A DNA stretch of 64,000 nt from Caecitellus pseudoparvulus (GCA_965644315.1 CBFFRQ010000057.1:372001-436000); one strand, 5' to 3'. Positions 17,601 through 44,280 are shown, numbered from the stretch's first letter. Made by a program: numbers and translations. Notes: generated from the letters alone by a model not told the origin.

Positions 17601-20479
17601 TGCACATGACAGAGAAGGCCGCTGCGGGGGGGGCCTGCATTGGCGTGGCACGGCCAGACTTCCCCTTCCGTAGTCGCAACGTGGGGGCCTTCGCAGGCTC
17701 GTGGGGCTGGTCCTCATCTGGCACTAAGGGCAATGGGCAGGGCGCCTTCATCGCGTATGGCGAGCGGTTCGAAGCAGGGGACAAGGTGGGTGTAGAGCTG
17801 GACTGTGATGAGGGTACCCTGCGCTTCCACAAGAACGGTGTGGACCAAGGCATCGCCTTTGCAACTGGGCTGAAGGGCGTGCCCCTGGTGCCAGCGGTGT
17901 GCTTGGGGGGCACACGCTCCCGCAAGTCAGCCCCCTCCACCTCTATCGCTGGCAACCACACACTGTGCCTGGTGCCCACTACCCTGGGCATTGCAGAGTA
18001 CCAGGCTGCTGCCGACTCTGCCTTGGACGCAGGCAGCTTGCGCACGATTGGGACGGGGGCGAAGGGGGAGGTGTCTGATGACGGGCAGCGGCTGTCTTTC
18101 TCCTGTGAAGGCTCAGCACCCACACATGACGCAGGCATCACAGTCAAGGCAGGCCCCAGTGTGCCATTTGCAGCGGAAGGCCCCACCACCAAGGTAAGGT
18201 GGACGTTTAGGGTGGACGAGCTGCACCTGCAGGAGCGCATCGCTGGCGAGGCCGTGCGAGACACCCTCATGGCCAGTGGTGCAGACACAGACGGTTGGAG
18301 GACTGCTGTCGCAGATTGGCTGTGGCAGATGCGGGGCGATGTGGGACACACCCTGTCGGCTGCGGCGCACAGTCGCATGCTTGGCGAGGAATCCGACGTG
18401 CCAGTCGTGGATGCTGCCGCCGAGGAAGGTGAGGCACGGGTGGCCCACGTTCACGCTGGCATCACCATCGGCCTGGCGTCCAGTGAATTCTTTGCTTCTG
18501 AAACACCAGCAGCGGGGGTGGGCTGTGACGCTTCTGGCCTGTCCGCAGGCATCACTTCCGTTGGGTTGGTTGTGCAAGGGGGCAAGGCGCACCCTGCACC
18601 TGGCTCCTCGACGCAGGGGGACTCCCTCTTGTGCCTGCCAGCACTCAGTCCTGGCGACGTCGTGTGCTTGACTGTCGCGCCGGGCGAAGCGGAGGATGGC
18701 AAGGCCGCCCACTCAGCGAGAGGACAGCAAGGCAGCTCAACCACCACTGGGCCTTCGACTGGCATGACCCCCATCAAACTCGCGCCCGCCCAAGCAGAGG
18801 CCTCGAAGCAGACCGGCCAAGGAGCAGGCACAGCCACCACTGCCCCAGCCAGCGACAAGACGGCGACGGCGCAGCCTGAGGCCGAGGCCCCTGCCCCCTG
18901 CATGCCCTACAGTGTCACGCTGTCGGTCAACGGCCAGGACCTTGGGCAGCCCCTCGGCCAAGCCCTGTTGCCGAGGATAGAAGCAGGGCAGGCCCTCGTG
19001 CCTGCACTGAGCATTGGCCACGGCGTGGCAAGCGCGGCTCTGACACTGCTCAGCACTGCACCGGCTTCGGACGCTGCTGTGCAGGCCAGCATGCAGCGAC
19101 GCAAACGCGAGGCCCACCTCTGCACCTTCCTCTCCCCACCTTCTGAGGTGCTAGGGCACAGCGTTTTGGAGGATGGCCAAGTTGCTACCTTTTCCCGGCG
19201 CTGGGCGACGGCTGCCATTGCAGCTGGGGTCCCGCTGAAGCTTGCCCAGCGCCGCACCCGCGCTCAGTGTGCGACTGCGGAACCAAGCCCCGTGCCAGAG
19301 ACCTCGCCTGTCTTCCCCACGCACGGCATCCCTCCCAACAGCGGCATCCATGCATTTCAACTGTACTGCAGCACGAAAGCCAGCGGCGGCGACATCGTCG
19401 TGGGTTTCGTGTCGGCAGCACCAGAGTCCCCCTTCAATTGGGCCTCGTGGCAGCTGGGCGCCAACTCCGCTTCCTGGGGTGTGGCTGGCACAGGCGCCAG
19501 GGGTGGTGGCTGGGTGAAGGGGGGTGAAGGGTGGCTGCCGTTCACCCCAGAGGCGGGGGACACGCCGCCCAAGCCGCTGTTCACCTCAGGCAGCATTGTG
19601 CAGTGGTTCGTTGACTCCGACCTGGACGAGGAGGGGCAGGCCAGATTCGGCGTGCGCGTGGATGGGCAGTTCACGGGACTGGCGCTGACCATCCCCAGCT
19701 GTGCGTTTCCCCTCGTGCCTGCCGTGTGTGGAGGTGGCGCCACCGCTGCCACTGCTCACCGAGTGCAGCTGCAGGAAGTGCCCCTCGCCGTGGACCGCGG
19801 ACAGGCATCCAAGCGCCTGCAGCTGTCGAAGAGAGACAGCATCATCACCTGCAAGTCCACCTGGGGCAGTGCTTTTGTCACACACAGCGGCATGTCCACC
19901 GGCAAGTATACATGGAGCTGGAAAGTGCTGCAGGGCTCAACATCGGGGGCTGTCTGTGTGGGTGTCGCAGACTTGAATCGTTTTCAAGTGACCTCGCGCA
20001 ATGTCGGTGCAGATAACCACAGCTGGGCGTACTCGTCAGCTGGCAAGCGCTCTGGCTCCAAGAGCGGCGAGTTCCAGTCCTATGGCTCCCCCTTCTCCAC
20101 TGGGGACATTGTGGGCGTGACCTTGGACTGTGACAAGAAGCAGCTGTCCTTCTCTTGCAACGGCACGTCTCACGGCGTGGCGGTGACGCGAGGCCTGAAC
20201 GCCTGCTCCTCTCTCGTGCCAGCCGCCTGCATCGGTAGCACCAAGCAGGGGGCTGTGCACTCGCTCGCGCTCCTGCCAGCCCTGACCGTGCAGCAGGTGC
20301 ACCACGCCCTGGCCTCGCCGTGGAGGTCCACGTGGTCCCCCTCTTTGGACCAGTCCAACAACACCCAGGCGTCAAGTCCAGGGGTTGAAGGCACCCCGGT
20401 GCCACTGAACCTCCCACCGGCAGCTCAGTTTGATGGTGGTGGCGCACCTTCCCAAGATGCAGCGGCCGTGGAGGGGTGA
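14624..20479 (+). CDS. Large protein: degenerate kinase-like N-terminus plus about six SPRY/B30.2 domains
   Basis: Three clear SPRY repeats (GKHSWAF...ICIGVA...WGYSSSG...GDVVGVYLDCDAGTLSFARNG...GVAF) and three degenerate ones. The N-terminal AWAAGCLIFHL...LLQPEADSRLP resembles a kinase C-lobe. Confidence 0.8.
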   Translation: MSEAVAAHARIVGLVPWGSRQAIVLSTGRPSSDAEEEGQPMCLVVPGLQEPPSSPGGALGEASLASEVTSVLGLDSSQARCLHCSQGLPVSAAFTVREAGNVRTALRAAQDVVQACLELQERGCVIIGAHAEQCTLSADGGVLLPEDCVVKAEGAEAKAWCLTTPAALTAIRQLVGGRLAQHAAPEVVSACDAGMETLPVAAQNAWAAGCLIFHLVDRTGVLPHPRVPGGVPFFSTESWGQATVPCTGDPGASLSSAAWTALRSVVQALLQPEADSRLPLQAAQAALGRVLEALSIHTTGDSALGAGAQLQVYVPEPAEDGSIELKAHSVPLPETGLLTSTESLAKAVHAHLQACGALSEDASAVHLSLKARGQSLPERVAYSFLDSAAASPTLAQTGLCLAPGQGTVRVLQEIIVTTSPSDLPPACVLAGASGQMLAKAHVLTNSRPGQDAAQRPTAPNKEACAGQGSPSPAAAAASAGAGDDAAATASPTPGEDLAKLVELATRRPTHEAAPTPSFVVSGFSQSERNPSVTVSDGCASSQQWGSAMCTVQGTERLDSGKHSWAFQVAQKAASGGICIGVATAEFDAPTKNLGPAQHTWGYSSSGKRSAGFPEFQPFAQGFSSGDVVGVYLDCDAGTLSFARNGVMLGVAFSDLKGKSVMPAVCMGGRASKSSHRPTVHKLRVLTSEEQYTKALQQARLRNPADLPSADFAWCGAGLPAARLPAPEAAPTFPVVCGGGWEAALPAPTLDSSTDLAVPAMVVPLQHPALSQACGVSPSGRYAFKFAVGTLDTDAEVWFCLVPHSALPDSDAVVAEAAPAHLPSPGLCQPGVWAVSSQGRVIAAGKVGETARFPALREGDCLGLEVGLPVEPDQGPAQGPTFEDLPTLAVTVNGAPAAELLPPLAQEAPQRSVFWAGALELGGLHPCVAVVEASTEASLAVVRTVEVPRMFSVQNANSHITAAGAGSSVTCASQWASAPIVHGGLTRGKHTWTLHMTEKAAAGGACIGVARPDFPFRSRNVGAFAGSWGWSSSGTKGNGQGAFIAYGERFEAGDKVGVELDCDEGTLRFHKNGVDQGIAFATGLKGVPLVPAVCLGGTRSRKSAPSTSIAGNHTLCLVPTTLGIAEYQAAADSALDAGSLRTIGTGAKGEVSDDGQRLSFSCEGSAPTHDAGITVKAGPSVPFAAEGPTTKVRWTFRVDELHLQERIAGEAVRDTLMASGADTDGWRTAVADWLWQMRGDVGHTLSAAAHSRMLGEESDVPVVDAAAEEGEARVAHVHAGITIGLASSEFFASETPAAGVGCDASGLSAGITSVGLVVQGGKAHPAPGSSTQGDSLLCLPALSPGDVVCLTVAPGEAEDGKAAHSARGQQGSSTTTGPSTGMTPIKLAPAQAEASKQTGQGAGTATTAPASDKTATAQPEAEAPAPCMPYSVTLSVNGQDLGQPLGQALLPRIEAGQALVPALSIGHGVASAALTLLSTAPASDAAVQASMQRRKREAHLCTFLSPPSEVLGHSVLEDGQVATFSRRWATAAIAAGVPLKLAQRRTRAQCATAEPSPVPETSPVFPTHGIPPNSGIHAFQLYCSTKASGGDIVVGFVSAAPESPFNWASWQLGANSASWGVAGTGARGGGWVKGGEGWLPFTPEAGDTPPKPLFTSGSIVQWFVDSDLDEEGQARFGVRVDGQFTGLALTIPSCAFPLVPAVCGGGATAATAHRVQLQEVPLAVDRGQASKRLQLSKRDSIITCKSTWGSAFVTHSGMSTGKYTWSWKVLQGSTSGAVCVGVADLNRFQVTSRNVGADNHSWAYSSAGKRSGSKSGEFQSYGSPFSTGDIVGVTLDCDKKQLSFSCNGTSHGVAVTRGLNACSSLVPAACIGSTKQGAVHSLALLPALTVQQVHHALASPWRSTWSPSLDQSNNTQASSPGVEGTPVPLNLPPAAQFDGGGAPSQDAAAVEG

Positions 20480-20486
20480 ATGCATT
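20479..20486. terminator. Palindromic AATGCATT, putative shared 3'-end signal (SPRY gene / FKBP15-like)
   Basis: GAATGCATTC overlaps the TGA of the + gene. The stops are 15 bp apart. Confidence 0.7.
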
Positions 20487-20494
20487 CCGCGGCG

Positions 20495-23182
20495 TCAACC
20501 GTCCCCTGCCTCTGCGCCAGTGCCCTCCCCTTCTGTGGGCGTGGCTGCGGCCACACCCTCCTTGAACCCTGCCTCTCGGGCACTTTGGATGGCAGCCAAA
20601 GCTTCTGCCTTGAAAGCGGCCTTGACCTGCGCGACGGTGTGGTCCTTTTCCCGCTCCAAATCAGCCACAGCCGCTTGGGCCGCGGCGAGCTTGGTATCCA
20701 GCTCAGCACACTGCTCCTGCAATGCTTCCACGCGTTGCCGCTCAGCCTGCAGGGAGGCCTGCACATCCGCCTCGCGATCCAGGCTGTCGGCTAAGTCACC
20801 CTGCAAAGCCCTCAGCTGCTCTTTGCTGTCATCACTGGCTGACACGGAGCGCAGCGCCCTTGCTTCCTCCCGCGCGGCCAGCAGCATGGCCAGCAGCTCT
20901 GCCTTGGAGTATTGGGCAAGGTCTGGCACGCCCCCTTCAGCACAGGCGGTCGAAAAGGCGCTTTGCTCCGCCTCTGCTTCGCCCCTCAGCCGCCTGGCTT
21001 CCCCCTCCGCACGCTGCGCCCGCTCTTTGCAAGCTTCTGCTTCATCCCGTATTGCCTGCAATTCACCTGCTGCGCCGGCATTGCCTCGCTTGGCAGCTGC
21101 CGCGGTGCGTTTCGCCGCGAGCAGCTGCTCTTGCAAGTCATCCTGCATCTCCAATGCTGCGTCATGCTCCTGTCGCGCGGTGTTCAGTGATGCTCGGAGG
21201 GTCTTCACCTTGCCTTCAAGTGCGGCGACCTTTTCGCGTTGAGCCGCCGCCCCACCCAACACGGTGGACAGAGACTGCAGCAAGCCACGCGCGTCTACGT
21301 CGCCTGCCTCGCCATCGTGGGCATCGCCCCGGGCAGTGCCCTTCTTGCGCCGACCTCGGCGGCGGCTCCGGCTGTCACCGCTGTCACTGTCAGAAGCAGA
21401 GGAGGAGTCACTGCGATGGCGGTGCCGCCGCCGCCGCCGCCGCCGCCCACCCCCATCCGCATCGCGAACAGCGTCTGACACCGAATCGAGCTTGGCCAGG
21501 ATACGCCCAGTGTCCACCAAGACTCGCTCAAGCATGCCTTGGCTGATCTGGGGCACAGGTGCCGCTACCATGGGTGCAGGAGCCGGGGCAGGTGTGGGCG
21601 CCGCGAGGGTAGTGTCTTCTTCAGACTCCACTGCCACCAAAGCCAACTCCTGGGCGGTTGCGGCTGGTGCTGGCGCGGCCGCAGTGGGTGCTGGGGCTGG
21701 TGCAGTGGCCGGTGTAGGGGCTGGCGTGGCAGCTGCCACAGCCTGCTCTGGCTGGGCCGGTACTGGCTCCGAGGCGCTGGCACTGGACCTCGCACGAGCT
21801 CTCCCGATCATCATCATGGGCCCGGCAGCCCCCTTGCCTGCACTTGCGAGACGTGCCATGCGCTCAACGAGTGCATCCTTGGACCCATCTTGGGGGGGGG
21901 TGGCGGGGACAGGGGCGGGCGTATGGACGGGAGCAGGGGCACTCGTGCCAGTGATGGTGACGGTGAGCACACTCCATGCGCTGCCGTGGGGGAGGGCCGC
22001 CTCGGCATCCCTGGAGCAGGGCGTCCAGGCATCAGTGACGTCTGGTGCGCCTTGCGCTTGCACAATGTTTAGCGCCGCTTGGGTTGGCAAGAGCCAAGCG
22101 TGGCTGCCGCCGTCTTGCACATCCCCCAGCAGCAGGTTGAGAGGGGCAACGAATATTGAGCTAGCGGGGTCCGGTTTGGTGCCAGCCGGGAGGGGACCGC
22201 TCCAGATATTTTTCAGGGCAGTCTGAGCCTGCCTGAGCTCTGAGGGCACTTTGGGCAGGCTGTGGATGGTTGCGGTGCCCTGGGCCGTGTGACCGGGTGG
22301 GATGCTGCCTCGCCCAGACGCCAGCTGACCATGCACGCGGTGTTGCACCAGGTGCATCCACCGATCATCTTCCAAGGGCCCAGGGGAACCCGCCTCTTCC
22401 CCTGGGAAGTCACTTTCAGGTCCATGCAGTGCTGCGAATGCCCTGAGGGCAAAGAATTTGTCCAAGAAAGAGCGGGCATGGGCTGGGGAGGCGGCAAGCA
22501 GGGAGTACTCCTTCCCATTCGCAGAGAAGTTAAGGTACGCGTTGTCGCCGTGGGGCCGGAAGGCGACGGCATGGTTCATGGGGCATGCGACCAGGGGCTT
22601 GCGCTTGCCATCGTACAGGAGGAGGGAGAAGGCGCCCGCCCCTTTGTGGAAGACCACCACCCCCACGTTGCCGTCACAGACGGCTGTGAAGGCGCCACTC
22701 TCCAACACGTACAGCGCGCGCGCCTGCTCTGCCAAGACCATCTCATCTTGAGCAGGTGCAGGGTTTGGGCCAGCCCCGCCAGCAGACGCTGCAGTCGCCG
22801 TACTAGCTGTGCTCTGTGGGCAGGCAGAGGCGGGCGGGTGCTGCACCTGCGCGCTGAGCAGGCTTCGTGCTCCACACGCACAGGTGACGCTTCAGATGAG
22901 GGGAGGCTGGGCTTGGGGGCTTTCTTCGCAGACGGCTGCACGAACCGTAAGCTGCGGTTGGTGCCGTCGTCCTCAGAGCTGCTGCCTGACCCCCCGCCGA
23001 GCAGGTCTCCCAGCGTGCCACCGCCACCACCAGCAAACAGGTCACTTCTGCTCTCAGCACGGGAGCTGCGTGCCTTGGAGCCTTGGAAGATGAAGCTGGG
23101 GGAGAAAGCGGCAGGCAAGTGGGGGCGAGGCGGAGCAGTGCGCTGGCTGGCGAGCTTGGGCGGGCGGGTTGGCTCACCTCAT
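20495..23182 (-). CDS. FKBP15/WAFL-like protein (WH1/PH-like domain, degenerate FKBP region, coiled coil)
   Basis: N-terminal LGDLLGG...SLRFVQP..KKAPK, then a beta-rich ALYVLESGAF..GNVGVVV..FSLLLYDGKRKPL..AYLNF segment, KDALVERMARLA and a C-terminal coiled coil. This order matches my recollection of FKBP15. The first exon is probably only ATG AG, followed by donor gtgagc. Confidence 0.6.
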
Positions 23183-23347
23183 GCCGTGGCGTGGTGGGTG
23201 AGCTGCACTGCACCAAGCTCGGCAAGGCTTCTCTCCACCTTCGCCCTGGGCAAGAGGCGTCTGCAGTGCCTGGAGCAGAACAGGGCATGCAGGGGCGCTG
23301 TCGGACACACAGCATGCGTGAATGACGTTGGAGAGTGCCGCGTGCTC

Positions 23348-23353
23348 TGCATT
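23348..23353 (-). terminator. AATGCA putative 3'-end signal (DAP3)
   Basis: 24 nt after the stop. Confidence 0.55.
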
Positions 23354-23377
23354 GCGTTTGCGCGCGGAAGGGCCTGC

Positions 23378-25484: not shown

Positions 25485-25848
25485 GGTTGGCAGCACTGGA
25501 GAAGAGGCACCTGCAGCACAAGCAGGATACTTGCAACACGTGGGGGATCCGAAGAGGGAGCATGCCACAACCCTGCGTTTTGCCACCTCTCACATTCTGC
25601 ACGTAAGCTGGGTGAAGCTGGCAATTTCCGCAGTCGCGTCGTGCAGTGCGCGCGGGTTTTCACTTCGCCAACGCCAAACCGCAGCACCTGGCTAGGGGGT
25701 GAAACACGGAAGCACTCGCCGCGAGCCAAGTTGCCTGCCAACACGCCTTGCCCACTGCAAGTCTCCTGCGCTGCCCCAGCAGCGCCGCGGCCAGGCATCG
25801 AAGGTTGCTCCCTCACCCTCCAGCGACCGAGTGAAAAGCCTGCGAGGC

Positions 25849-26836
25849 ATGCCAGCTGCCAGCCCCGCACAGGGCGGGGGAGGAGGAGGCCTCGTTGGTA
25901 ACAAGGACAGTGTCACAGAAGGCGCAAGAGGACTCGTTTGTGGCCTGCTGTACGGCCTGGCCTCGCCGCTTGTGGGGTGCGTGGTGCTCTGGCGCAGCGA
26001 TTCCCCGCCCCCCGCACCGCTGCAGGGGCCCTGGCACGCACCGCCGCAGGCACCCTCTGGACACCATCAAAACCAAAATGCAAGCACAGGCGTCCTTCGC
26101 CCGTGCCGGAGCACTGCGCACTCTGCGGGAAACGCTTGCCAAGGAGGGTGCCCGGGGTCTGTACCGAGGCCTGCTGCCGCCGCTGTTCGGGTCCATGGTC
26201 TTCCGCTCCCTGCAGTTCAGCGCGTACACCTTCACCTACGCCGCAGTGCGCGACAACGAGGCCCTGTGCACGCCCCAGCCCTGGCTGGGGGGCATGCAGC
26301 TGCGAGTGCTGCTGGCTGCCACAGTCAGCTCCACTGTGCGCAGTGTGATCGAGACGCCCCTTGAGCACGTCAAGGTGCGCAAGCAGGTGGGGCAGCCGTG
26401 GATGCGCGCAGCGACGCCTGCACAGGCCATGCAGGCGCCTCTGCGCGAGGTGGCGCACATGTACTCTGGCTTCGGCGTGTGCTGGGCTCGCACCGTGGCG
26501 CTCATGGGCAGTTTCTTCGTCATGCTGGACACACTCGGGCGGGTGGCGCCGGGCCTCATCGCTGCAGGGCTGCCTGGTGCCTTCGTCAAGGGCGGCATCT
26601 GCGCCACCACGGCCTGGGCCATTTGCTGGCCCTTCGAACTGGCCAAGAGCCGGGTGCAGGCAGGGGCGGCGTCGGGGTCGTGGGCGGCGGAGCTGCGGCA
26701 GGTTCTGCGCAGCGAGGGTGTTCGTGGAGTGTACAGGGGCTTCGGGCCGGGTGCGGCACGTTCCATTTTCGCGAACGGAACCAGCATGCTGGCATTTACA
26801 GCCTGCCAGGCGTGTTTTCAAGGCATGGATACTTGA
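25849..26836 (+). CDS. Mitochondrial carrier family (SLC25) protein
   Basis: Three Px[DE]xx[KR]x[KR] motifs (PLDTIKTK, PLEHVKVR, PFELAKSR) with EGARGLYRG and EGVRGVYRG. One intron near 25977-26050. Confidence 0.92.
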
Positions 26837-26881
26837 TCATGCAGATGCGTGCACCCAGCTGCGAAGCATGGCGACAAATTC

Positions 26882-26887
26882 AATGCA
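26882..26887 (+). terminator. AATGCA putative 3'-end signal (mitochondrial carrier)
   Basis: 45 nt after the stop. Confidence 0.55.
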
Positions 26888-26989
26888 AGCCGTGCAGCCA
26901 GGTCTTCCTTTGTCACCCCCACCGCACCCATCCTCTGCCACTCGCGATCTTGAGGGCACCTCGGCGCCTGACGGCCAGGGCCACTCATC

Positions 26990-28310
26990 ATGATCCAGTC
27001 AGCGCTGCGGAGAGGGCTCAGCACGCCCCGCACGCCGAAGCATGCGCGTTTCCTGCACGTCTTGCCCAACGTAGACGCTGTGCGAGAGTGGGTGGCGCAC
27101 AGGCCTGGCAGTGTGGGCTTTGTGCCGACGATGGGCGCCCTGCACGGGGGCCACATGCAGCTGGCAGCTGAGGTGCGGAAATCGTTTGCGACCAGCGCAG
27201 CGCTGGCTTCTCCCCCTCTTCGTGCACTGCCGGGCGCTCCCCACGCAGTCGAAGCGCACGTGCGATGCAACCATCGCAAGCATCTTTGTGAATTCCACCC
27301 AATTCGCGGCACACGAAGACCTGGAGAGCTACCCAGCCCTGCGTCCAGAAGTGAGAGCCGCAGACCTTGACCTCCTTCGTCAAGCGGGTGTAGACGCAGT
27401 GTACATCCCCGAGGACCCTTGGGAGGTGTACCCGACATGGCCACCTTTCAAGAGCTATGTGGTCCCTGAGGGCGGCTCGGCTGCCAATGAAGGAGCTGCC
27501 AGGCCTCACTTTTTCCGCGGCGTGGCCACGGTCGTGACGAAGCTCTTCAACATCGTCTCGCCCACGCACGCGTTCTTCGGGGCCAAGGACGCGTACCAGT
27601 GCATCGTCGTTAAGGCCTTGGTGCGGGACTTGAACATGTCTCGGCCTCGGCACATAGTCGTCGTCCCAACGCAGCGGGCGGAGGATGGCTTGCCCGACAG
27701 TTCACGAAACGTGTACCTCACAGCTCCACAGCGCGCTGCAGCGCCGATGCTGTACCGCATGCTAGCAGGGTTGCAGAGTGCGTTGGAAGATGCCCCGCGG
27801 GGCGGCAACGGCATGCCCAGTGTGTCGCTGCTGCATGACTCGCTGCTGCCAGCTGCGCACGCTGCGTTGCAGAATTGCCTGCGGCAGCACCACCCTGACG
27901 TGACTGCTTCCTTGGAGTACCTGTCCCTCATGGACGCTGCCAGTGGCCTGGACGTTACGCCCACATGTGCCGAGACCTGGCAGAACGAGGCAGCGCTGGA
28001 GCGTTCCGCCGCTCTGTGGGGCTTCAGTTGCAGTGCCCAGCCTGCCGCCGGCGAGAGATGGGAGGTTCCCCTGCACCGAGCTATGGACACGTCAAAGCCA
28101 CCACCAGGGTTGGAACGTGTGCACAGCAGCTGTTCAGCCACGCCAAGCAGGGCATTTATCTCCCGCTCCCGCCGTGAGGCTGTGCTGCCTGCGCCGCTGG
28201 TGTTGTCAGCCGCCCTGGCGTTTCAACCGAGCAAAGGCCAGGGTGGCTTCGTGCGCGTGCTAGACAACGTGATGGTGGGCGGCGCCCTGCAGTGCTTGGG
28301 CGGACCATGA
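26990..28310 (+). CDS. panC: Pantoate--beta-alanine ligase (pantothenate synthetase)
   Basis: GFVPTMGALHGGH (HIGH motif), SIFVNSTQF, RPHFFRGVATVVTKLFNIV, FFGAKDAYQ, DGLPDSSRNVYL and VRVLDN. Intron about 27173-27248. Confidence 0.93.
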
Positions 28311-28317
28311 ATGCATT
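28310..28317. terminator. Palindromic AATGCATT, putative shared 3'-end signal (panC / AsnRS)
   Basis: Overlaps the panC TGA. The stops are 19 bp apart. Confidence 0.7.
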
Positions 28318-29805: not shown

Positions 29806-30073
29806 GGCCACTGCAGTGCTTGCACCAGATGCAATTTCCGCCTCAACCCCTCCCGGTGGCAGGAGCAGGTAAGCCTCAAGGGGCCGCAGAAGGAAGCATT
29901 CGAGTGCGCCTGGGCAGAGCTAATTCCCTAAGGCGTGTACAGTGATGTTGGGCGTCAAGTGCATCGCCTGTGCGCCAACTGCTCACGTGTCGCTCGCGAA
30001 GTCAAGCCATGCGTGGTGCTCACGCAAAACCATGGGCAGCCTCATCCACTTACTGTACACTTCCAACGCACAG

Positions 30074-30079
30074 TGCATT
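30074..30079 (-). terminator. AATGCA putative 3'-end signal (CTL)
   Basis: 64 nt after the stop. Confidence 0.5.
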
Positions 30080-32049: not shown

Positions 32050-32422
32050 GGCGAACAGTGTCAGCAAGAACAGTTCGAGGCTGCAATGCCTTGCGGGCCC
32101 ACAGTTTGCTATGTTGATTGGAAAGTGGAAAAAATATCAGATCTCGATTTTTCTCCGCAGGAGCCATCGCGGAAATTGGTCATCCGTACCTCTCGCTTTT
32201 CACGGCGACAGGGCTCACCTACATCACCCTCTGGCCAAAACAAAATCACGCGAGCAACTGATTGCATGCCTGGAGTGCAAGAAATGTGCATGTTTTGCTC
32301 CCAGCACTCACGTTTGGAACGGAGAGCCGCCGAGTTCCGAGCTCCCACCTGCGGCTCTGCCGTTGGAGTCCTGCACCGTCAGAGGCACTCCTCGCCCCTG
32401 TGCAGCTGCTCGGACCAGAAAT

Positions 32423-34242: not shown

Positions 34243-34250
34243 AATGCATT
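34243..34250. terminator. Palindromic AATGCATT, putative shared 3'-end signal (AVT / mucolipin)
   Basis: GAATGCATTC overlaps the mucolipin TGA on the minus strand. The stops are 31 bp apart. Confidence 0.7.
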
Positions 34251-37224
34251 CACTTTGGTCCCTTGCGGGCGGGCTTGCGTTTGGGGGCCTCTTCTGAGTT
34301 CCGCCGCATGGCTTCCACGGCATCAGCCCCGAGGAAGAAACGGCCCAGAGGGTCGTCTGGGTTGAGCGCTAGCGCGTGCAGGTCTGGCTTGGCGGCCTGT
34401 TTCAACAGCGACTCCTTCTTGCGCTGGCGCGCCTCTCGCCGTGCCTGTTTTGCCTTCTTGCTGCTGCTCTGCAGCGCAGGGCCGTGTGAAACGCTGCGCC
34501 GGATCAAGCCCGCTTCGTCGGCAGCCAAGGCGGGCCCGCCAGCGGCTGCGGCTGCTGGGCCGCCGGGCGGTGTACCTGGTGCCACAGGACTGCCAGTGTC
34601 CGCCGCAGGTGCAGGCGTGCTCACAGGCATGGCTGACGCTGGCTGCTGTGCAGCTGTGCTGCCCGCCACGCTGCCACCGGTGCTGGCTGCCTGCCCTGCC
34701 CGCCGCATTTCTGCCTGCTGCTGCAGGAGTTTCTCCGACTGCTCGGCGGTGGAGTAGAAGGACTCCTCAATGACGGCGATGAGGATGTTCAGGACGACGT
34801 AGATGAAGAGGGACACGAAGACGTACATGAAGACCTGCCCCATGACGGGGTGGAACTCCATGAGCGTCATGAAGGTCTCACGCACCACGTCGCCGTTCAG
34901 CACTGCGAAGAGGGTCACGGCGGCCGTGGCCACGTCCCCAAAGCGAGGGGCAGTGGCGGCGAAGTAGACGACGGAGAACATGGTGAATGCCATGAATACG
35001 GGAAGGACACCCAGCAGGAAGCGCATGACACGGGGAATGCCCTTGCGCAGCGTGAGGACGAGCGAGTAGTAGTGGGGGTTGTGCTCCAAGTACCGCACGA
35101 GGCTGACCCACAGCAGTGAGCACCCGAAGGCGATCATGAGGGAGTGGAAGGGGGACGTCGGCGCGTGGGCCACGCTGCCTGTCAAATTCAAGACGCAGGC
35201 GACGATGTTGCATATGGAGGCGATGAAGGAGAGGATGGACCAGCGGTTGAAGAGGACCACCTTGCTGGACCAAGGAATGCTGTTCCAGTCCAGCCCCAAG
35301 TCCTCTGCCATGTCCGTGGAGGTGGAGCCATCTGAGGAGGAGGAGGGCCCCCCCTCTTCACCCTCCGGGCCCCCCTCCTGCCCAGCCATCCACTTCAGCG
35401 CCGTGCTGGCCCGGCCGGCGGGGGAGTACAGGTCAGTGTCGTCGGTTGCGACGCGTGTGCGCGTCGGCGTGCGCAGCTTGGGCAGCAGCACTCGGTCGCT
35501 GCCGTCTCGATTGAGTGAGGCTTTGCCCTCCCCGCCGTCGCCGCGTGCGATGCCTGTAACATCGCTGGACGCCCTGTCGCTGCGCACAGACGTGGAGCGC
35601 AGGATGTCATCGGCAGTGTCGGGGCGCCTGGCGGCCTGCTGCAGCAGCTGGGGCGGCATGGGCACCGTCACGCCGTTGCAGTGAATGAGGGCACCGCCAC
35701 CTGACAAGTCGTTCGTGAAGTACGAGTCGGGGTGCTGGATCAGGGCGATGGCTTGGCGGATGAGCGGGTCCCGACTCAGCGCCGCCACGTGCTCATCATC
35801 GCTGCTGCTGCTGCTGTCTTCCGGCGCGTGGCGGCGCCTGTGCCTGCGCTTGCGCCCTGCAGCAGCCCCTGTCGACGCGTCAACGAGCAAGGGCTCCCGC
35901 ATGCTGCGGCGGCGTGGTGGTGTGGGGTCGGGCGGGGCGCGGCAGCAGGGTGTGGCTGCCTGCCACAGCCACTGCACAGGCGAGCGTTGAGGGGTGGAGT
36001 CCTTGGACAGCGCCGCGAACTCGCCTGCGATGGTGTACGTGCGGTACACTGCGCGCAGGAGGAGGAGGAGGTGGGCCGTCGCCAGGACGAGGATGACGAC
36101 GTTCAGCCACAGCAGGCGGTCGCCCAGGCGCTGCACGGCGGATGGGTACTCGTTGCAGGTGCCCACGACGTTGTTCACCATAAGCAGCTGCAGCTGGCCC
36201 CGGTCTGAGAACTTGTACTGCACGACCACCTCCCAGTCCACACACGTCCGGTACAGAGTGCCGAACCCGAACGACTGCAGGGGCAGGGTGAGGATCATGC
36301 CATGCAAGCCCCGGAAGAAGGTGTGCAGGGCTGGCATGGGGAGGGCGTCATCTCCATCTAGTGCCTCCTGCAGGGTGATGTTGTCGGCTGCCAGCGCGGT
36401 GGACAGCGGCCCAAGCCACGTGCTGTTCACGGCGTACGTGTGGCTGACGGTGGAGGGCACGAACGTCTCGTGGGCATCGAACAGCGCCTCAGCGTGGGTG
36501 TACGTCTGCACCGTCAGGTGTGGGGCGGTCGGCACCTCACTTAGTCTGCCATCTGCCCCCCTGTAAAAGTACGTGTCCAGCTGCCGCGCGTTGATGTGGT
36601 AGTAGTTGTCCACTGCTCGGTGCACGGCGGCCAGCGCACCCTGCATGGTGTACACTTGCCATGCGGGGTCGGAGAAGTCGTAGTCCTCAGGGTAGAACAG
36701 GTACAGGAAGTTCCTGTTAGACGCCAGGTACCACGAGTTGTCCTGCGTGTTCAGCACGATCACCTGCGGCAGAGGGTGTCGGTGAGCGTGCGGAAATTGG
36801 CTCGCCTCCCCACACACGCCTCTGACTCACCTGCGCTGTCACGAGGGCGACGAGCAGGACATTGAGCAGGATCTTCCACGGGAAAATGCCGTAGTACTTG
36901 AACTTCTCCCACGTCGGCAAGAACAGCCGCTCTCGGAGCCCAAGCTGCTCCTTGGGGCGAGGGGGTGTGCCCGAGCTGCGGTGGGAGAGAGGCAAACCTT
37001 GCACAGCGCACGGTGCCAAGCGCACAGAAGCAGGGTGCCGGCGAACCCCAATACCAGCAGTAGTGAAGTGTGGGATGATAACATCACACGGCACTGAGCG
37101 AGCCTCAGCGTCGAGGTTTTCGCCACGATGCTCGTCGCTGAAATGGTGCACTGCACTTGGCCCGCACGCACCTGCAGCACAAGTACGACCACGGAGGAGG
37201 GTACTCCTTTGCGTGGCACAGCAT
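34250..37224 (-). CDS. Mucolipin (TRPML)-like cation channel; start uncertain
   Basis: LFLPTWEKFKYYGIFPWKILLNVLLVALVTAQ (mucolipin pre-S1/S1), a large luminal loop, WVSLVRYL, pore LFAVLNGDVVRETF, and S6 LFIYVVLNILIAVIEESF. Confidence 0.87.
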
Positions 37225-37604
37225 CAGAGAAATCTAATGAAAAGCTTTATTCTTTACACAGAAGCACCGAGCGCGAAGGCTCAGGGACGGCGGCAAAGCT
37301 GACACTGTTGTGGGCTGCGGAGGTTCGGCAGTGGCTCAGGGTCACGAGCGCAGCAGCGAGACCAAGGCACAGTTCCGGAGAAAGCCCAGTGGCGCGAGGG
37401 AAAGCAGTGTGCCCAACAGTGGCAAGCCGGCGAAAGTCACCCGGCACATTGTTTTGATGCAGGCGTTCATTGTGCGGGCGGGAGAGCAGAGCGGCTCGAG
37501 GTTCTGGGTGGGAACAAGCAATCCATACACCCTGCGCTGCCCAGCGAAGCCGTTGCGTTGCTGCAGCGGGCAGGCTATCACAGACCTGAGCTTGAAGTCC
37601 AATT

Positions 37605-38984
37605 TCAGGTGCAGGGTGCCGTGCATGCGGCATTTGGCGCGCCCTCGGTTGAGTGCGAGAGCGCGTCGCGCTCAGCTTGACGCGGCACTGTTGCTGCTTG
37701 GTTCAAGACGGCACCCTGCGCTTGCTGCGATGTTCGAAACCAAGTCTGCGCAGCTGTCAGATGTCTAGGCAGCACAGGAGGGGGTTCAATAGGCCACTCG
37801 CCATCGCCAGAGTCAGTGGGACCGCTGCCTGGAGCGGCGCCTGCCAGCGCCTCCTGCAGGGGAAGCCAGGCAGCGTAGCGGACCATGGCCGCCACATCGG
37901 CTCCAGAGCACCCTTGCGTAGCCGTGGCCAGGGCACGTGCATGCTCCGGCGTGATGCAGTGGGGCGTGTTCCCAGCTTGGAGGCTTGCAGTGACAATGCT
38001 CGCTCGCTGGTCAGTGTCTGGAAGTGGCACGGCCGCCACGCGCATGCGGCGCAGAACGGCAGGGTCAATGGCCTCTGGTCGATTGGTAGCGGCGAGGAGC
38101 ACCGTGCGGTGCCCTCCTTGCTGGCCTACAGCTGCAGCCAGCGTGTCCAGTTCCAGGAGAAGCTGGCAGACCAGCCTGGCAGGTGCGACGGCGTCGCAGG
38201 CGCTTCGACGCGGGGCTATGCTGTCCAGCTCGTCAATGCACAGGACGCTGCAGGACGACGTGGCTGCAGCTGCCCGTGCATGGGCAAATGCCCGGCTGAG
38301 GCTGCCCTCGCTACCACCCGTGTACCTGGACAGGACATCTGAGGGGCTCAGGAAGATGCAGGCAGCGCCCACAGCCTCAGCCGCTGCCTGCATGAGGGAA
38401 GACTTGCCCGTGCCAGGAGGCCCAGTCAAGAGCAGTGCTGTGGGCGCTTGGCGGGCGCCACGTAGCCACTCTGGTGGCAGCAGGAGGGGCAGTAGCAGCG
38501 TGTGCTGCAGGGCAGCTTTCGCGTCCTGTGCCCCTGCAATGTGCTTCAGGGCAAGGTGGAAGGCGTGCGCAGTGACTTTGGAAAGTGGCGAACGCGCGCA
38601 TGCTGCCTTGATGCTTGCCGCTTTGGGGTCTCGCTGCAGCTGTGCCGTCTGCGCAGTGTCTTTGGTGCTGGCTACCGAGTCCACCGGCTCAAGGGCAAGG
38701 TCTCCCTGCTTGAAATGCTGGGGGCGAAGGATGCGTGCTGAGGAAGGTGAGCTTGGTGTGTCCCGGCTTTGGGCTCCGCAAGGGCTGTTGATGCTGCTTG
38801 TGCGTGCGGTTTTTGCAGACGGCTCCTGCGTTGCACGTCGCGCAACACATGCCCGCTTCACTGCCCCAGAGCCGCAGCACACCAATGTGCCTGAGTGCAA
38901 TGCATGCACCTGGTGGCCTTTCAAAGCCTCAGCATTGCTGCTGGCTTGGTTTGTGCCGGTCAGACGTGGACGGGCGGGCTGCAT
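37605..38984 (-). CDS. AAA+ ATPase (meiotic clade: katanin/spastin/fidgetin/VPS4-like); start uncertain
   Basis: IAGAQDAKAAL, GPPGTGKS (Walker A), IDELDSI (Walker B) and AATNRPEAIDPAVLRR (SRH). Confidence 0.85.
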   Translation of the reverse strand: MQPARPRLTGTNQASSNAEALKGHQVHALHSGTLVCCGSGAVKRACVARRATQEPSAKTARTSSINSPCGAQSRDTPSSPSSARILRPQHFKQGDLALEPVDSVASTKDTAQTAQLQRDPKAASIKAACARSPLSKVTAHAFHLALKHIAGAQDAKAALQHTLLLPLLLPPEWLRGARQAPTALLLTGPPGTGKSSLMQAAAEAVGAACIFLSPSDVLSRYTGGSEGSLSRAFAHARAAAATSSCSVLCIDELDSIAPRRSACDAVAPARLVCQLLLELDTLAAAVGQQGGHRTVLLAATNRPEAIDPAVLRRMRVAAVPLPDTDQRASIVTASLQAGNTPHCITPEHARALATATQGCSGADVAAMVRYAAWLPLQEALAGAAPGSGPTDSGDGEWPIEPPPVLPRHLTAAQTWFRTSQQAQGAVLNQAATVPRQAERDALSHSTEGAPNAACTAPCT

Positions 38985-38985
38985 T
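38980..38985 (-). terminator. AATGCA putative 3'-end signal (NAF1)
   Basis: 52 nt after the stop. Confidence 0.5.
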
Positions 38986-39037
38986 GAGGAGAGGCGTTTG
39001 GTCCGCGTTGCAAGGAGACCCCGCCAGTGGCACCCGC

Positions 39038-40723
39038 TCACGACGACGACGGGGGTGGCGGTGGTGGCGGTACCTGCCCTTGTGCAGCATTGTTATTCGC
39101 CAGTGAAGTGTTTTGGCCACGGTTCATGGCTGCCGCGGCACGGGATGCAGCAGCCATGAACTGAGCTGCCGCCGAGCTGGGCGCGTGCTGGTGCGCTGGT
39201 GGCACGGTGTGGGATGTTGGGAAGTGCACCATGCCAGCTTGGAACTGGGGTGCTGGCGCGGTGTACCCCATGCCTGGAGGTGCCATCGTGTGGCTGCTGG
39301 CCATGGCATGGTGCATGCTGGCGATGCGGGCTTGCAGCGCCGCAATTTGAGCCTGCTGCGCGGCAATGGTCGCTCCCATGTCGCCCGCCGGCGCGTGCGC
39401 ACCCCCTGCTGAGGATCGGTTGCCACGACTGCGCTTGCTGCGCCCTCGGCGCCTGCCGTCGCCCTCGACACCCCCTCCGCCCCCGGCAGCCTGCGCTGCC
39501 GTGGCTAAATCTGGCGCTTCCTGGCTGCTGGCGCCAGGCCTAGCCCGCCGGCGCACCCTGCGAGCAGCCGCCTCCGCCTCGTCGTCGCTGAACTCTGCGT
39601 CCGACGCCTCTTCGTCGTACCTATTGGAGGCGTCTGTGGCGGGGGCCACTCGGCACAGGGCCGGGTTCACCGTCGCGCTGTACTCCACGATGCTGACCAC
39701 GGCATCCCCAGGGGAGATGTCATCCATGTGCGCCAGGGTGTGCTCCCGCTGCACCCCCTCCTCCGCCACCGCCGCCGCCACCTCCTCCTCTGCAGTGCCT
39801 GGTGCCGCCTCTGCAGCGGGCTGGGACACCGCCGCCTGGGCCGGTCGGCACTGCGCAGCGGTGAGGCGTACGACGTAGCAGGGCTGGGACACCGCCCCGA
39901 ACACCTCGTCGATGCGACCCAGAACACGCAGCGGGGCTTGGTTCTCCCCCGCCAAGGCCAGCAGGGACCCTTCCTCCAGCACACCTGCCGCCACCTCCGC
40001 CAGCACCCCCCGAAGTGGGGAAGCCCCATGTGCCAGGCCGCCTGAGGGGGCGAGGGGAAGGGGCGCTGGTGTGCCGGCGGCTGCCCCCGGATGCTGCACG
40101 ATGACCGTGCCCTGGTCAGGCTGAGTGAACAGCACGTTGCCTGCCGGCTGGATGGTGCAGTCGGCGCCCACTGCCACCTGCAGCGGCTCGGCGAAGGTGG
40201 GGGGGGCGCTCTCGTGGGCTGTGCGCAGGGGGCCGCTGGCCTCCCCCGTGTCATCGTCATGGTCAGCTGGCCCAGCGCCGGCAGTGGGGCCGCCCGTGGC
40301 GTCCCCTGCATGTGCTTTGGGAGTCGCCTGTTGGTCGGGCTCGAGCGCGGGCGCGCCGCCGGCACCGCCCTCCTCTTCGCTGCTGCTGCCTTCGTCCAGG
40401 CTGCTGGCAGGGGCAGCCTCGTCCTCAGCTCGCTGCACTGGGACAGGCACGGGGTCTGTGTCATCTTCAGCTGATGCAGCTGCCACGGCAGCTGCCAAGA
40501 CGTCGGTCGTCATGCCCAGGTGGTCTGGGGTCCACTCTGGCTCGCGCATGGCCGCAGCAAGTTCCGCAGCGAGGTGCTCCAGGTCGCCCTGGGGGGCGGT
40601 GCCTTGAGGCAAGTCAGTGCTGGGTTGGGCAGGCAGGGATGCAATGCGTGCTGCTTCCTTTGCTTCGGCCTCTGCGTGGGCTTGCGCCACGCTCAGGTCG
40701 CTGGGGGCGCCGTTCTCAGCCAT
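39038..40723 (-). CDS. NAF1: H/ACA RNP assembly factor NAF1 (Gar1/Naf1 domain)
   Basis: VLEEGSLL...LGRIDEVFGAVSQPCYVVR and the NAF1 signature DASNRYDEE..EFSDDEAE. Confidence 0.85.
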   Translation of the reverse strand: MAENGAPSDLSVAQAHAEAEAKEAARIASLPAQPSTDLPQGTAPQGDLEHLAAELAAAMREPEWTPDHLGMTTDVLAAAVAAASAEDDTDPVPVPVQRAEDEAAPASSLDEGSSSEEEGGAGGAPALEPDQQATPKAHAGDATGGPTAGAGPADHDDDTGEASGPLRTAHESAPPTFAEPLQVAVGADCTIQPAGNVLFTQPDQGTVIVQHPGAAAGTPAPLPLAPSGGLAHGASPLRGVLAEVAAGVLEEGSLLALAGENQAPLRVLGRIDEVFGAVSQPCYVVRLTAAQCRPAQAAVSQPAAEAAPGTAEEEVAAAVAEEGVQREHTLAHMDDISPGDAVVSIVEYSATVNPALCRVAPATDASNRYDEEASDAEFSDDEAEAAARRVRRRARPGASSQEAPDLATAAQAAGGGGGVEGDGRRRGRSKRSRGNRSSAGGAHAPAGDMGATIAAQQAQIAALQARIASMHHAMASSHTMAPPGMGYTAPAPQFQAGMVHFPTSHTVPPAHQHAPSSAAAQFMAAASRAAAAMNRGQNTSLANNNAAQGQVPPPPPPPSSS

Positions 40724-40940
40724 GGCTGCGGAAATTGCCTCGTTCCCAAGTCGGCAGAGGCAGCGGGCACGGTACGCCTGTCCCTGCTCAACACAAACCA
40801 GTCGGCGCCGTGTCTCGACCAATCATTCATGAAGACCAGTTCGCTCGCTCGTGGTGCGTCCTGCACCGCTTCAGTTTTGTGCCGTCCAGGCTGTGTCTCG
40901 CACAGCCGCTGCTTGCCGAGAACCGAGCTGTGACGACTGC

Positions 40941-42037
40941 ATGGCGTCTGCGGCAGCAGAGGCACAGCCGGAAGGCGTGCCGGACACCCTGTCTCCAGAT
41001 GCAGAGGAGGCCATGTTGGAGGCGGAGGACCTCTTCTTCGAAGGCGTGTTGGACGCCGCCGAAGACAAGGTGGTTGAGGTGTTGGCGAGCCACCCCGCCA
41101 ACCGGGAGGCGCTCCTGCTGCTGTGGCAGCTGCAGACGCAGCAGGTGGGTGGCGCGGGGCGAATGCTCCGCACCCTGTACACGCCCCCCTCCCCCGCTGT
41201 TGCCCGGCACAGCTGAAGGATACCGCTGCCCTCGGCACAGCACAGCGACTGGCGTCGCTGCCCGGCGATGGCGCCGCTGCGGCTGACATGCTCATCGCCT
41301 CCGCCGCTGCCGTGTCTCCCAGCAGCAAGGGGCAAGCTGTGCTGGAGGGTTTCCTGGCGGCAGACGCCAGCAGTGGCGCGCTCTCCCGTGCTGGCGCCAA
41401 GGCCCGTGCCGTGCTGGTGGAGCTGGAGGGGGGGGGCATGTCCGCCACCACGGCAGCCTGGCTAGCACCGCCCCTGCGCGAGGCGGCCAAGGCAGCCCTG
41501 GGCCTGCTGGCATCCCCGCCTGCAGACGATGCAGGCGCGCCCGTGTCCCCTGCAGCGCTGGAAGAGGCACTGTACACTGCGTGGGGTGAGGCTGGAGCGG
41601 CGGGGGGGGAGGCGGAGGCGGCCGGAGCCGTGGAGGACATGCTGGGCGTGCTGCGGTGCGCCCGGGCCAGTGCGGACTTCCCCACGCAGCAGGTGCTGCC
41701 TTTGGCGCTGGCCCTACTGGCGTGCTTGCTGCTGCAGGTGGGGGAGGCGGGCGCAGCGGGGGATGTGGTGGCGGCGGCATCCGGTGTGGAGGCGCCCCTG
41801 GCGTGCAGTGGGGATGTGAACATCACAGGCGCGCGGTGCTTGGTGTCGGCGAGCGGCGGCGACGCCCAGGCGAGGGGTGACTCCGAGTCACTCGCGGCCA
41901 CAGGCGGCTTGGCGCTGTCGCCCCTCATTCGCCGCCGCCTGCTGACCCTACCCGCAGCTGCGCCGGCACAGGAGGGGGGCGCAGAGGACGCGTACGACCC
42001 ACGCCTGGACGAGCGTGATCCCTTCTTCGGGATGTGA
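40941..42037 (+). CDS. Hypothetical helical (possibly TPR-like) protein, one intron
   Basis: Exon 1 (MASAAAEAQ...LQTQQ) joins in frame through gtgggt...cacag (about 41144-41212) to the ORF ending YDPRLDERDPFFGM. AATGCA follows the stop. Confidence 0.6.
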
Positions 42038-42038
42038 G

Positions 42039-42046
42039 AATGCATT
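42039..42046. terminator. Palindromic AATGCATT, putative shared 3'-end signal (orphan / SDHC)
   Basis: Occupies 8 of the 14 bp between the two stop codons. Confidence 0.7.
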
Positions 42047-42051
42047 TGCGG

Positions 42052-42671
42052 TTAGAACTCCACGACGGCAGCGAGCAGTGTGGCGGTGGCGGTGCCCGCC
42101 AGCAGCGCATAGGCGCCCTGCTCCACCTCCTTGATCTCATGCCCCTTCACCTGGTCCCACATCTGCGCGCAGGGAAACGATTCGTGTGGGCCCCTGCCTG
42201 GCGCGCCTTCAAGCGGGGGGGCGTGCGCGAGGGCGTACCAGATGACGCATGCCATGGCCGAAATGGTAGGCGAGGGCACCGCCCACCGCGGCGCGCACCA
42301 AGGGAGCCACGCCAGCCTCGTGCAGGGCGGTGGTCATCTCCAGAATGCTGGTACCTGTGCCTGCCAAGCCCAGGGACACTGCTGCCAGGCCTGTGAGGCG
42401 GGGTGGCGGCTGATGTGCGGGGGCAGCCGGCCTGCGGAAATCCGCGTCACGCACCGACTGTCATGCCCACGCCAGTGCCACGGAAAGCGATGGAGGTCAT
42501 AGCGTTGAGGGGCAGGCGGTAAATGGTCAAATGGGGCGACAGGGGGCGCTGCACTTCCCCAGCCTTGGTGGCCAGCATGGCTCGGGCCGCCACGGGCGTA
42601 GCGGCTGCCACTGGCGCCTGCACAGCAGACAGGCGGGCAGCCATGCCGGCAGTAGCGCGGGCGAGGGCCAT
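42052..42671 (-). CDS. SDHC: Succinate dehydrogenase cytochrome b560 subunit (SDH3), 2 introns
   Basis: RPLSPHLTIYRLPLNAMTSIAFRGTG and ALAYHFGHGMRHL|MWD. Presequence MALARATAGMAARL. Confidence 0.93.
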
Positions 42672-42750
42672 GTCGTCGAGGGATTCGCGCGTGTGGGAGC
42701 ACAGGTGCTTCGTGTCTGTTGGTAGCGGCCGGGTTGCCGTTCGTTGGTTG

Positions 42751-42756
42751 TGCATT
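42751..42756 (-). terminator. AATGCA putative 3'-end signal (SDHD)
   Basis: 31 nt after the stop. Confidence 0.55.
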
Positions 42757-42787
42757 TCGTTTTGGTAGTGCCCCGGGCTGAGGCCGC

Positions 42788-43479
42788 TCACGCGTCGGCC
42801 TCCTCGGCAGCCTTGGCCTTGGGGGGCGCCACCCACAGGCTCTTCACGCCGGCTGACAGCCCGACGTCGGCGAAGTTGAGGCGGGCCAGGGCAGCGGCGG
42901 TGAGGACAGTGACGCCTGCCAGGGCCATAAGGGCCATGCGCTGCTGCTGGGGCTCCCAGATGTAGTCCACGATGACGCTGCGCATGCCGATGTGTGTGTG
43001 CAGGGGGATGGCGACGTTCAGCACCATGTCTGCGACGCTGGTCATGGGCGCGCCGAACAAGAGAGCCACTGGCACACCGGCGGCCAGTGCGTAAGACGAG
43101 TAGTGGTACACCTCCTTCACTGTGCTGGCCTTCACGGAGCCGGGGATGAGAGCTGCAGGGGGGAGGACAATGCAGAGGTGAGGGGGCACAAATAGGTGTG
43201 CAGTCGGGGGCCGGCCAGAGTCGTCCTGGGCAGGCCTGTCACCGTGCGTGGTGCATGTGGGCACCTGCGGAACTTACCGTCGGCCTGGCTGTAGACACCC
43301 TGCGACGTAGCCATGCCGCGCGCAGCAACTGCGAAACGCACAGGGACCCCAAGGGGGGATGAGCGCGGATAGCACACAGAGGGGGGGAGCGGGCGCTGGT
43401 TCGCACTGTGCAGGGAGGGCAGGGCTGGGCGGCTGCTCAGCGCCAGGTGAGCTGCTGATGTGGCAGCCTTTCGCATCAT
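42788..43479 (-). CDS. SDHD: Succinate dehydrogenase small membrane anchor (SDH4/CybS), spliced
   Basis: YHYSSYALAAGVPVAL...DMVLNVAIPLHTHIGMRSVIVDYI. Presequence MMRKAATSAAHL|...AARGMATS. Confidence 0.9.
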
Positions 43480-43834
43480 GGTGACCGGTGGGTGGCGTGT
43501 GCGCTGGTTGGTGGGCGACCATAGCACTGTGACGTAGGAGGGGGCAAATGCTGGAGGCGTGAGAGGGTTTGGCCTTGCGCGAGGGCTGCGCTGCGCAGGG
43601 TCGGAGTGTGGGGGGGGTAGAGAGCACAGCCCAGCAGCGCGAAGGGCTCCAGGTGCAGTCACGCGTCAAAACGCATGCACATATCTGCCCGCACCCCGCC
43701 CTGTACTTCACTCCCACTCGCCGTGGTCGTGCGCTACGTCGCCTTGGCTCCGGTGCCTTTCAAGAGCAGGCTTGGCGGCTGTTGCCAGGCACAATTCCGC
43801 ACTGCTGCAGAGGCAAGGCGCGGCACAAGCAGCC

Positions 43835-44237
43835 ATGTCCACCGTGCCCACGCCCGATGGGCCAGTGTTCACGTCCAGCTTCATGAATGGGTTCTTCAGC
43901 AAGGAGCGGCGCCTGGCGCAGATGGGCAGCCACCACGAGGCAGACCTGCAGGCTCGGGAAGCAACACACATCGTGCACTACCGCAACGCGATCGAGAAGT
44001 GCGTGGGGCGCAGCCGCGCAGCGTGGCCAGATGCCCATGCACCCCCTCCCTGCCCCGCCCCACCGCAGCAAGAGGTTGAAGGCGCACCCTGGCCACACCA
44101 CTCGGCGCCCCGTCAGCGTCGTGCGGCGTGACCCGCTGCTGCGCGATGGACTGGGACACTACGCTGGGTGGAAGTGGCACCAGGCCTACGTGCAGGGCAC
44201 CCTGTCCAGGTTCATGCAGGGCAAGCCCATCTTGTGA
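43835..44237 (+). CDS. Orphan 110-aa protein, one intron (43999-44068)
   Basis: ATG in gccATG context. Removing a 70-nt gtgcgt...ccgcag intron gives a 333-nt CDS: MSTVPTPDGPVFTSSFMNGFFSKERRLAQMGSHHEADLQAREATHIVHYRNAIENKRLKAHPGHTTRRPVSVVRRDPLLRDGLGHYAGWKWHQAYVQGTLSRFMQGKPIL. G/C-ending codons dominate, and AATGCA follows at 44273. Confidence 0.7.
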
Positions 44238-44272
44238 AGGGGTGCTTGCCCTGCCGCCGCCGCAGCAGGCTG

Positions 44273-44280
44273 AATGCATT
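44273..44280. terminator. Palindromic AATGCATT, putative shared 3'-end signal (110-aa orphan / SDHB)
   Basis: Centred in the 75-bp gap between the stops. Confidence 0.7.

Follow-up and report, generated by a model that had tools for sequence, protein, structure and literature searches.

The window analysed here is a stretch of 64,000 nt from the protist Caecitellus pseudoparvulus (C57:372001-436000 of a 30.6-Mb assembly in 215 contigs), with a GC content of 59-68% and a very tight packing of genes, whose introns are short (64-125 nt). The element in question is an 8-nt palindrome, AATGCATT, of which the window holds five copies against 0.57 expected, a number that none of 100 dinucleotide-preserving shuffles reached. 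All five lie between the stop codons of convergent genes, in spacers of 15, 19, 31, 14 and 75 bp. A reading made earlier from the sequence alone (the sequence-only reading) had assigned these palindromes to five of nine convergent pairs, and its coordinates, spacers and pair count all agree with ours. The copy at 20479-20486 separates an SPRY gene on the plus strand, whose TGA ends at 20479 and gives the first A of the palindrome, from an unnamed 748-aa gene on the minus strand (stop at 20495-20497). The one at 28310-28317 is placed between panC (plus; its TGA overlaps the first A) and an organellar-type AsnRS gene (minus; stop at 28330-28332). At 34243-34250, an Aa_trans transporter gene (plus; stop ending at 34218) faces a PKD/TRP-type channel gene (minus), the TGA of which overlaps the last T. 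The last two copies adjoin SDH genes: that at 42039-42046 is shared by a spliced plus-strand orphan gene (stop at 42035-42037) and SDHC (minus; stop at 42052-42054), and that at 44273-44280 by a small spliced plus-strand orphan gene (stop ending at 44237) and SDHB (minus; stop at 44313-44315). The sequence-only reading had further described a sixth convergent pair with AATGCATA, and this motif is indeed present at 55313-55320, where it supplies a plus-strand hexamer to a 1784-aa gene from just inside the coding sequence (CDS) of the convergent minus-strand gene; it is a one-strand site and not a full palindrome.

Because codon and Markov coding models overlooked the Pfam-confirmed Aa_trans gene (31609-34218), the gene pairs of the window were curated by hand using Pfam and RNA evidence. 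Pfam matches support SPRY, PanC, AsnRS, Aa_trans, the PKD/TRP-type channel, SDHB and SDHD. Most gene labels of the sequence-only reading thus stand, namely SPRY, panC, AsnRS, AVT (Aa_trans), mucolipin (PKD/TRP-type channel) and SDHB; FKBP15, its name for the 748-aa gene, drew no Pfam match. SDHC is backed by spliced minus-strand contigs and by Sdh_cyt at the matching place in the gene order of both near-identical strains and relatives. Neither of the two plus-strand orphans (41123-42037 and approximately 43835-44237) gave any Pfam match.

Each palindrome contains the hexamer AATGCA, whose place at gene ends was studied in 264 kb (the window joined to the adjacent upstream 200 kb), with open reading frames (ORFs) scored by a 3-periodic Markov model; genome-wide statements are based on motif counts, for which the reversed motif served as the control, together with the reading of these 264 kb and of 15 loci of 3 kb. 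No hexamer is enriched as strongly as AATGCA within 100 nt after stops: it is found at 39 of 65 coding-scored ORFs versus 1.46 expected (p=2.5e-47), in sense orientation and at offsets between -2 and +94 nt relative to the stop. Its density peaks directly after stops, whereas that of composition-matched control hexamers is flat, and no other candidate hexamer comes near the roughly 60% of gene ends at which it occurs. The count over the genome is 14,744, compared with 1,756 for the reversed control. The used sites that are not palindromic have the consensus C-AATGCA-C/G; in none of 23 is the hexamer followed by T, and no obvious U- or GU-rich downstream element is seen at them. Where genes are arranged in tandem, the hexamer has the orientation of the upstream gene in 20 of 20 cases. 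At three window stops the TGA is fused to the hexamer as TGAATGCA (20477-20484, 28308-28315 and, on the minus strand, 34245-34252); the stop codon gives the first A of the hexamer and, therefore, the 3' untranslated region (UTR) of these genes starts within the stop codon. A single TAATGCA case was noted in the upstream 200 kb.

The full palindrome, in turn, is a feature of convergent gene ends. The 264 kb contain nine copies of AATGCATT, eight of them between convergent ORF ends; the context of the ninth is ambiguous, as a minus-strand ORF stops at a distance of 15 nt and the plus strand has none but short ORFs. Of 17 closely spaced convergent pairs in this sample, eight share AATGCATT and one has AATGCATGCATT, while in two each gene has its own hexamer, in four just one of the genes has a hexamer, and two lack it altogether; the spacers of the pairs that share the palindrome measure 14-108 nt. 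Among gene ends that bear a hexamer, 16 of 26 convergent ones are palindromic versus none of 20 tandem ones (Fisher p=5.8e-6), and the difference persists when pairs are counted (8/17 versus 0/20, p=6e-4), which supports the sequence-only reading in confining the palindrome to convergent pairs. The whole genome has 1011 copies of AATGCATT and 22 of the reversed control. The density of the palindrome, one per 30 kb, is in line with the 264-kb sample, and its count is approximately four times what the frequency of AATGCA and p(TT) predict. With G or C required on both flanks (SAATGCATTS), the counts are 610 and 2. AATGCATGCATT, a 12-nt palindrome made of two abutting hexamers, is found 42 times compared with 0 for its control, including one copy at C57:172891-172902; at 13 of 15 sampled loci (L021-L035, from contigs C13-C43) it lies between convergent long ORFs. 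On small contigs, CAATGCATTG forms clusters with a spacing of about 25-100 nt (C5:11620/11720/11816 and 14627/14651; C8:8128/8150), and these copies probably lie in repeated elements rather than between genes.

RNA data were available as Logan contigs from three metatranscriptomes (X1, the deeper run; X8; and X11, an oligo-dT library) and were examined over window positions 40001-46000. The contigs are spliced and, therefore, derive from RNA. A plus-strand GT..AG intron at 41142-41209 is removed in an RNA contig of the partner of SDHC, and another at 43999-44068 is removed in contigs of two runs in the partner of SDHB, so that both orphans are transcribed, spliced genes; the CT..AC introns of SDHC, SDHD and SDHB are spliced out as well. 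The X1 contig of SDHC extends across the 42039-42046 palindrome as far as 42033, a point 8 nt beyond the hexamer, and thereby includes the stop codon of its partner and 2 nt of the partner's CDS; no other contig end was seen at this palindrome. In X8, the spliced contig of the plus-strand orphan terminates at 44285 and that of SDHB at 44266, respectively 7 and 9 nt beyond the hexamer of each gene; the two overlap by 20 nt around the palindrome at 44273 and were left unmerged since such an overlap is too short at k=31. In X1 a single contig bridges both of these genes, which implies that some molecules overlap by at least 30 nt or read through. The X11 contigs span portions of the SDH gene bodies, without a 3' end at either palindrome, and a look-up of the exact window AsnRS protein for transcript contigs with tails returned nothing on record. 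The sequence-only reading had proposed that each mRNA is cleaved beyond the shared site, often within the partner's CDS, and had named transcripts that stop before the palindrome as evidence to the contrary. The contigs of both strands pass through it, and three contig ends 7-9 nt past the hexamer agree with the first part of this proposal, in which cleavage and polyadenylation are, however, our inference from ends at which no poly(A) letters were seen; the overlap does reach the CDS of the partner, but by only a few nucleotides and in the tightest pairs only.

Further AATGCA sites of the window are on one strand. Seven of them had been quoted by the sequence-only reading as lying behind tandem genes; all seven are real, none is palindromic, and each reads in the direction of the upstream gene. 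Six face the minus strand: 3794-3799, 27 nt past the stop of a 2003-aa gene and followed by C; 23348-23353, 24 nt past that of DAP3; 30074-30079, 64 nt past that of a choline-transporter-like gene; 38980-38985, 52 nt past that of a Gar1/Naf1-like gene (39038-40723); 42751-42756, 31 nt past that of SDHD/CybS; and 45501-45506, 5 nt past that of the gene at 45512-49078. The seventh, at 26882-26887, is on the plus strand, 45 nt past the stop of the ORF at 25835-26836. Two further minus-strand hexamers are found at 11376-11381 and 61731-61736, respectively 16 nt past the stop of the gene at 11398-14190 and 34 nt past that of the gene at 61771-63975 (both minus).

As to the neighbourhoods of the palindromes, SDHC, SDHD (CybS) and SDHB form a minus-strand cluster (42052-45400) with short CT..AC introns in each gene, and the first plus-strand orphan (41123-42037) has a counterpart at the same place in relatives L040 and L041. 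The AsnRS (28330-29811, minus) is of bacterial type, with its best matches in Verrucomicrobia and Planctomycetes (about 52%), besides a few eukaryote-like metagenome hits at 64%. Here and in relatives it adjoins panC, panB/panE, a mitochondrial carrier and DAP3, a setting which suggests that it is an organellar enzyme.

The relatives also bear on the distribution of the signal. Metagenome contigs with an AsnRS 64-65% identical to that of the window keep the convergent arrangement of AsnRS and panC, with spacers of 14-32 nt that contain neither AATGCATT nor AATGCA; these spacers are rich in G-runs such as GGGGGTGCATGGGGG (L036:3558-3571, L037:2354-2368, L038:11312-11343). Contigs with an SDHB 83-84% identical, retrieved with the last exon of SDHB as the query, retain the gene order SDHB-SDHD-SDHC-orphan-Gar1-AAA-channel and show AATGAA, AATAAA or AATGCA at the stop, with no palindrome. 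The near-exclusive use of AAUGCA is lineage-specific, since AATGCA follows 1 of 30 long-ORF stops over all relatives as against 39 of 65 in this genome. The 30 ORF ends of the relatives are only suggestive as to AATGAA, AATAAA and AATGTA being the signals that these organisms use themselves. Near-identical strains (L043 and L044, at about 99% identity) have every one of the six SDH-region motifs, which at 1-1.7% divergence is uninformative on conservation.

We are fairly confident that AAUGCA is the main hexamer of the poly(A)-signal type at 3' ends in this genome and that approximately half of the close convergent gene pairs share it through AATGCATT, read on both strands. Under this model, the hexamer, in the form C-AAUGCA-C/G, would be recognised in the sense transcript at a distance of 0-90 nt downstream of the stop, with the RNA ending some 7-9 nt further on. 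Adding TT to the signal of one gene would yield AATGCATT, with AATGCA on both strands; the palindrome is valid on both because its TGCA core reads identically on either strand. In this way about half of the closely spaced convergent pairs, at approximately 1000 sites genome-wide, would use one 8-mer for both genes. Both transcripts would cross the shared site and end a few bases beyond it, so that the mRNAs would overlap in antisense by about 20 nt, and in the tightest pairs this overlap would extend to the stop codon or the last codons of the partner. Selection for short spacers, or for the early halting of convergent polymerases, would favour such merging, and the palindrome may have been selected because very short spacers thereby become possible. 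The sequence-only reading saw in this a genome-compaction device: a signal shared between the two strands is supported, but the word device is too strong, as the data fit equally well with two signals, each required independently, that were merged by selection for short spacers.

With regard to the machinery, we infer that the contig ends represent cleavage and polyadenylation sites of the canonical cleavage and polyadenylation specificity factor (CPSF) apparatus. A screen confined to the presence or absence of protein families showed that the genome encodes the C-terminal domain of a CPSF73-type endonuclease (97 bits, C3:18668-19195). The CFIm25 family (PF13869) has no match in the genome, and a CFIm-type reader of UGUA was rejected as a candidate on that ground. 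A Piwi-domain match was found once, and it is weak (34 bits, within a 918-aa open frame, C41:129337-129717). Double-stranded RNA formation or co-regulation arising from the overlaps, raised by the sequence-only reading, is a matter of speculation and unsupported, nothing beyond this single match speaking for it.

Several points weigh against the model of a shared AAUGCA signal. At the panC/AsnRS junction, a 99%-identical metagenome strain has AATGTATT in place of AATGCATT (L039:1995-2002, corresponding to window positions 28310-28317), the sole change in 171 aligned bases, and the exact palindrome is therefore not strictly required there. Within 100 nt of 26 of the 65 ORF ends there is no AATGCA; some of these are internal exons and others may use alternative signals, e.g., AATGTA and AATACA, which are weakly enriched at such ends and hence may be tolerated variants of AATGCA. 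Beyond the window the gene models are ORF-based and noisy, since introns exist. The RNA-level evidence covers two palindromes (42039 and 44273), and because no contig end has poly(A) letters and contigs cannot prove RNA ends, the transcript end some 7-9 nt past the hexamer is graded as likely.

These points have to be set beside other ways of accounting for the motif. Two independently required copies of AATGCA could simply coincide in tiny spacers, as their self-complementary TGCA cores allow, leaving a palindrome that has no value of its own and was not selected. Such a by-product would sit well with the convergent pairs that use two separate hexamers or one (spacers of 73, 112, 62, 42, 38 and 129 nt), and with the loss of the exact palindrome in one strain. 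However, free placement over about 0-90 nt from the stops would produce the one exact register in a few percent of pairs and not in 8 of 17; moreover, T is otherwise avoided after the hexamer (0/23), and the genome-wide fourfold excess of the 8-mer over its predicted frequency is also at odds with mere coincidence. We hold this explanation to be very unlikely. Much the same low standing belongs to the idea that AATGCATT acts on DNA, as the site of a dimeric binding protein (a roadblock terminator, an insulator, or a cohesin or chromatin boundary factor), and is never read on RNA. The half-sites behind tandem genes have an RNA-like polarity, being confined to the sense strand of the upstream gene (20/20); transcripts pass through the motif and stop just after it, whereas a roadblock would leave ends upstream; and the motif often overlaps a stop codon or falls in the CDS of the partner. 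What speaks for a DNA site is its intergenic position and the perfection of the 8-mer palindrome, a form common in the sites of dimeric DNA-binding proteins.

A location in the 3' UTR on the sense strand would by itself suit a regulatory element just as well as an end-forming signal, and AAUGCA might then be the site of a stability or translation factor that does not define the 3' end. Against this, AATGCA marks some 60% of gene ends with no other hexamer close, the three contig ends keep a near-constant 7-9 nt from the hexamer even though the distance to the stop varies, and sharing between two strands is sensible only if the signal is one that all genes require; we therefore regard a purely regulatory role as extremely improbable. 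A hairpin terminator was rejected separately: the 8-mer cannot fold, being loop-less with at most 2 base pairs, and its flanks add at most 1 bp of symmetry.

If AAUGCA is the 3'-end signal, as we favour, it could mark 3' ends by a simple annotation rule in a GC-rich and very compact protist genome, and convergent pairs, with small unannotated genes like the two plus-strand orphans among them, could be recognised by AATGCATT. The system would present a clean case of compaction, in which two genes have one signal in common to the nucleotide, at times together with their stop codons, and a forced overlap of about 20 nt at approximately 1000 loci would make the regulatory effect of convergent overlaps directly testable here. 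A poly(A) signal that can shift sharply between relatives sharing gene order would also offer a natural system for the evolution of hexamer recognition by CPSF. Bases 4-5 of AAUAAA are held by zinc finger 3 of CPSF30 in the CPSF-AAUAAA structures. A more far-reaching scenario, which we consider unlikely, is that this lineage, since diverging from the relatives with which it still shares gene order, re-tuned the hexamer specificity of its cleavage/polyadenylation factor, so that AA gave way to GC at these two positions; a palindromic two-strand signal would thus have become possible, approximately 1000 convergent pairs would now depend on it, and the obligatory antisense overlap of about 20 nt would be readable by an Argonaute-type protein, coupling the expression of neighbours.

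In the literature searched, including that on stramenopiles, Cafeteria and thraustochytrids, there is no report of AAUGCA or AATGCATT as a 3'-end or poly(A) signal. The canonical poly(A) signal is AAUAAA, with minor variants such as AAUGAA and AAUACA, and is recognised by CPSF30 and WDR33. Like AAUAAA, AAUGCA is a sense-strand hexamer and would stand a short distance ahead of the 3' end; the two agree at A1, A2, U3 and A6, and positions 4-5 are GC instead of AA. In Trichomonas (UAAA) and Giardia (AGUAAA), non-canonical poly(A) signals take in the stop codon, as cited in PMC8767320. The present case resembles these in being a lineage-specific replacement of AAUAAA in a compact genome, with three window stops fused to the signal through TGA (TGAATGCA), but it differs in sequence, and the passages of PMC8767320 consulted make no mention of palindromic sharing by convergent genes for them. 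Palindromes at transcript ends are also seen in Mimiviridae, where, according to PMC4402537, palindromic polyadenylation signals form hairpins that are cut by a viral enzyme; unlike those, the 8-mer described here cannot fold.

The closest analogue is provided by the bidirectional termination zones of yeast, in which a self-complementary element of the poly(A) type between convergent genes likewise serves both strands. These zones, of about 120 nt, centre on the palindromic efficiency element UAUAUA, with 3' ends that are symmetric around the element and overlap, an arrangement that the authors read as a way of coping with limited space (bioRxiv 10.1101/2022.11.02.514956). The yeast zones, with UAUAUA (or UACAUA/UAUGUA), are nucleosome-depleted and rich in AU; the element here is AAUGCAUU, in DNA of 60-68% GC. 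Whereas the yeast element is itself a palindrome, AAUGCA is not, and the palindrome is an 8-mer extension that occurs only where genes converge. The spacers, at 14-108 nt, are far shorter than the yeast zones, and the distance from signal to transcript end is probably about 7-9 nt.

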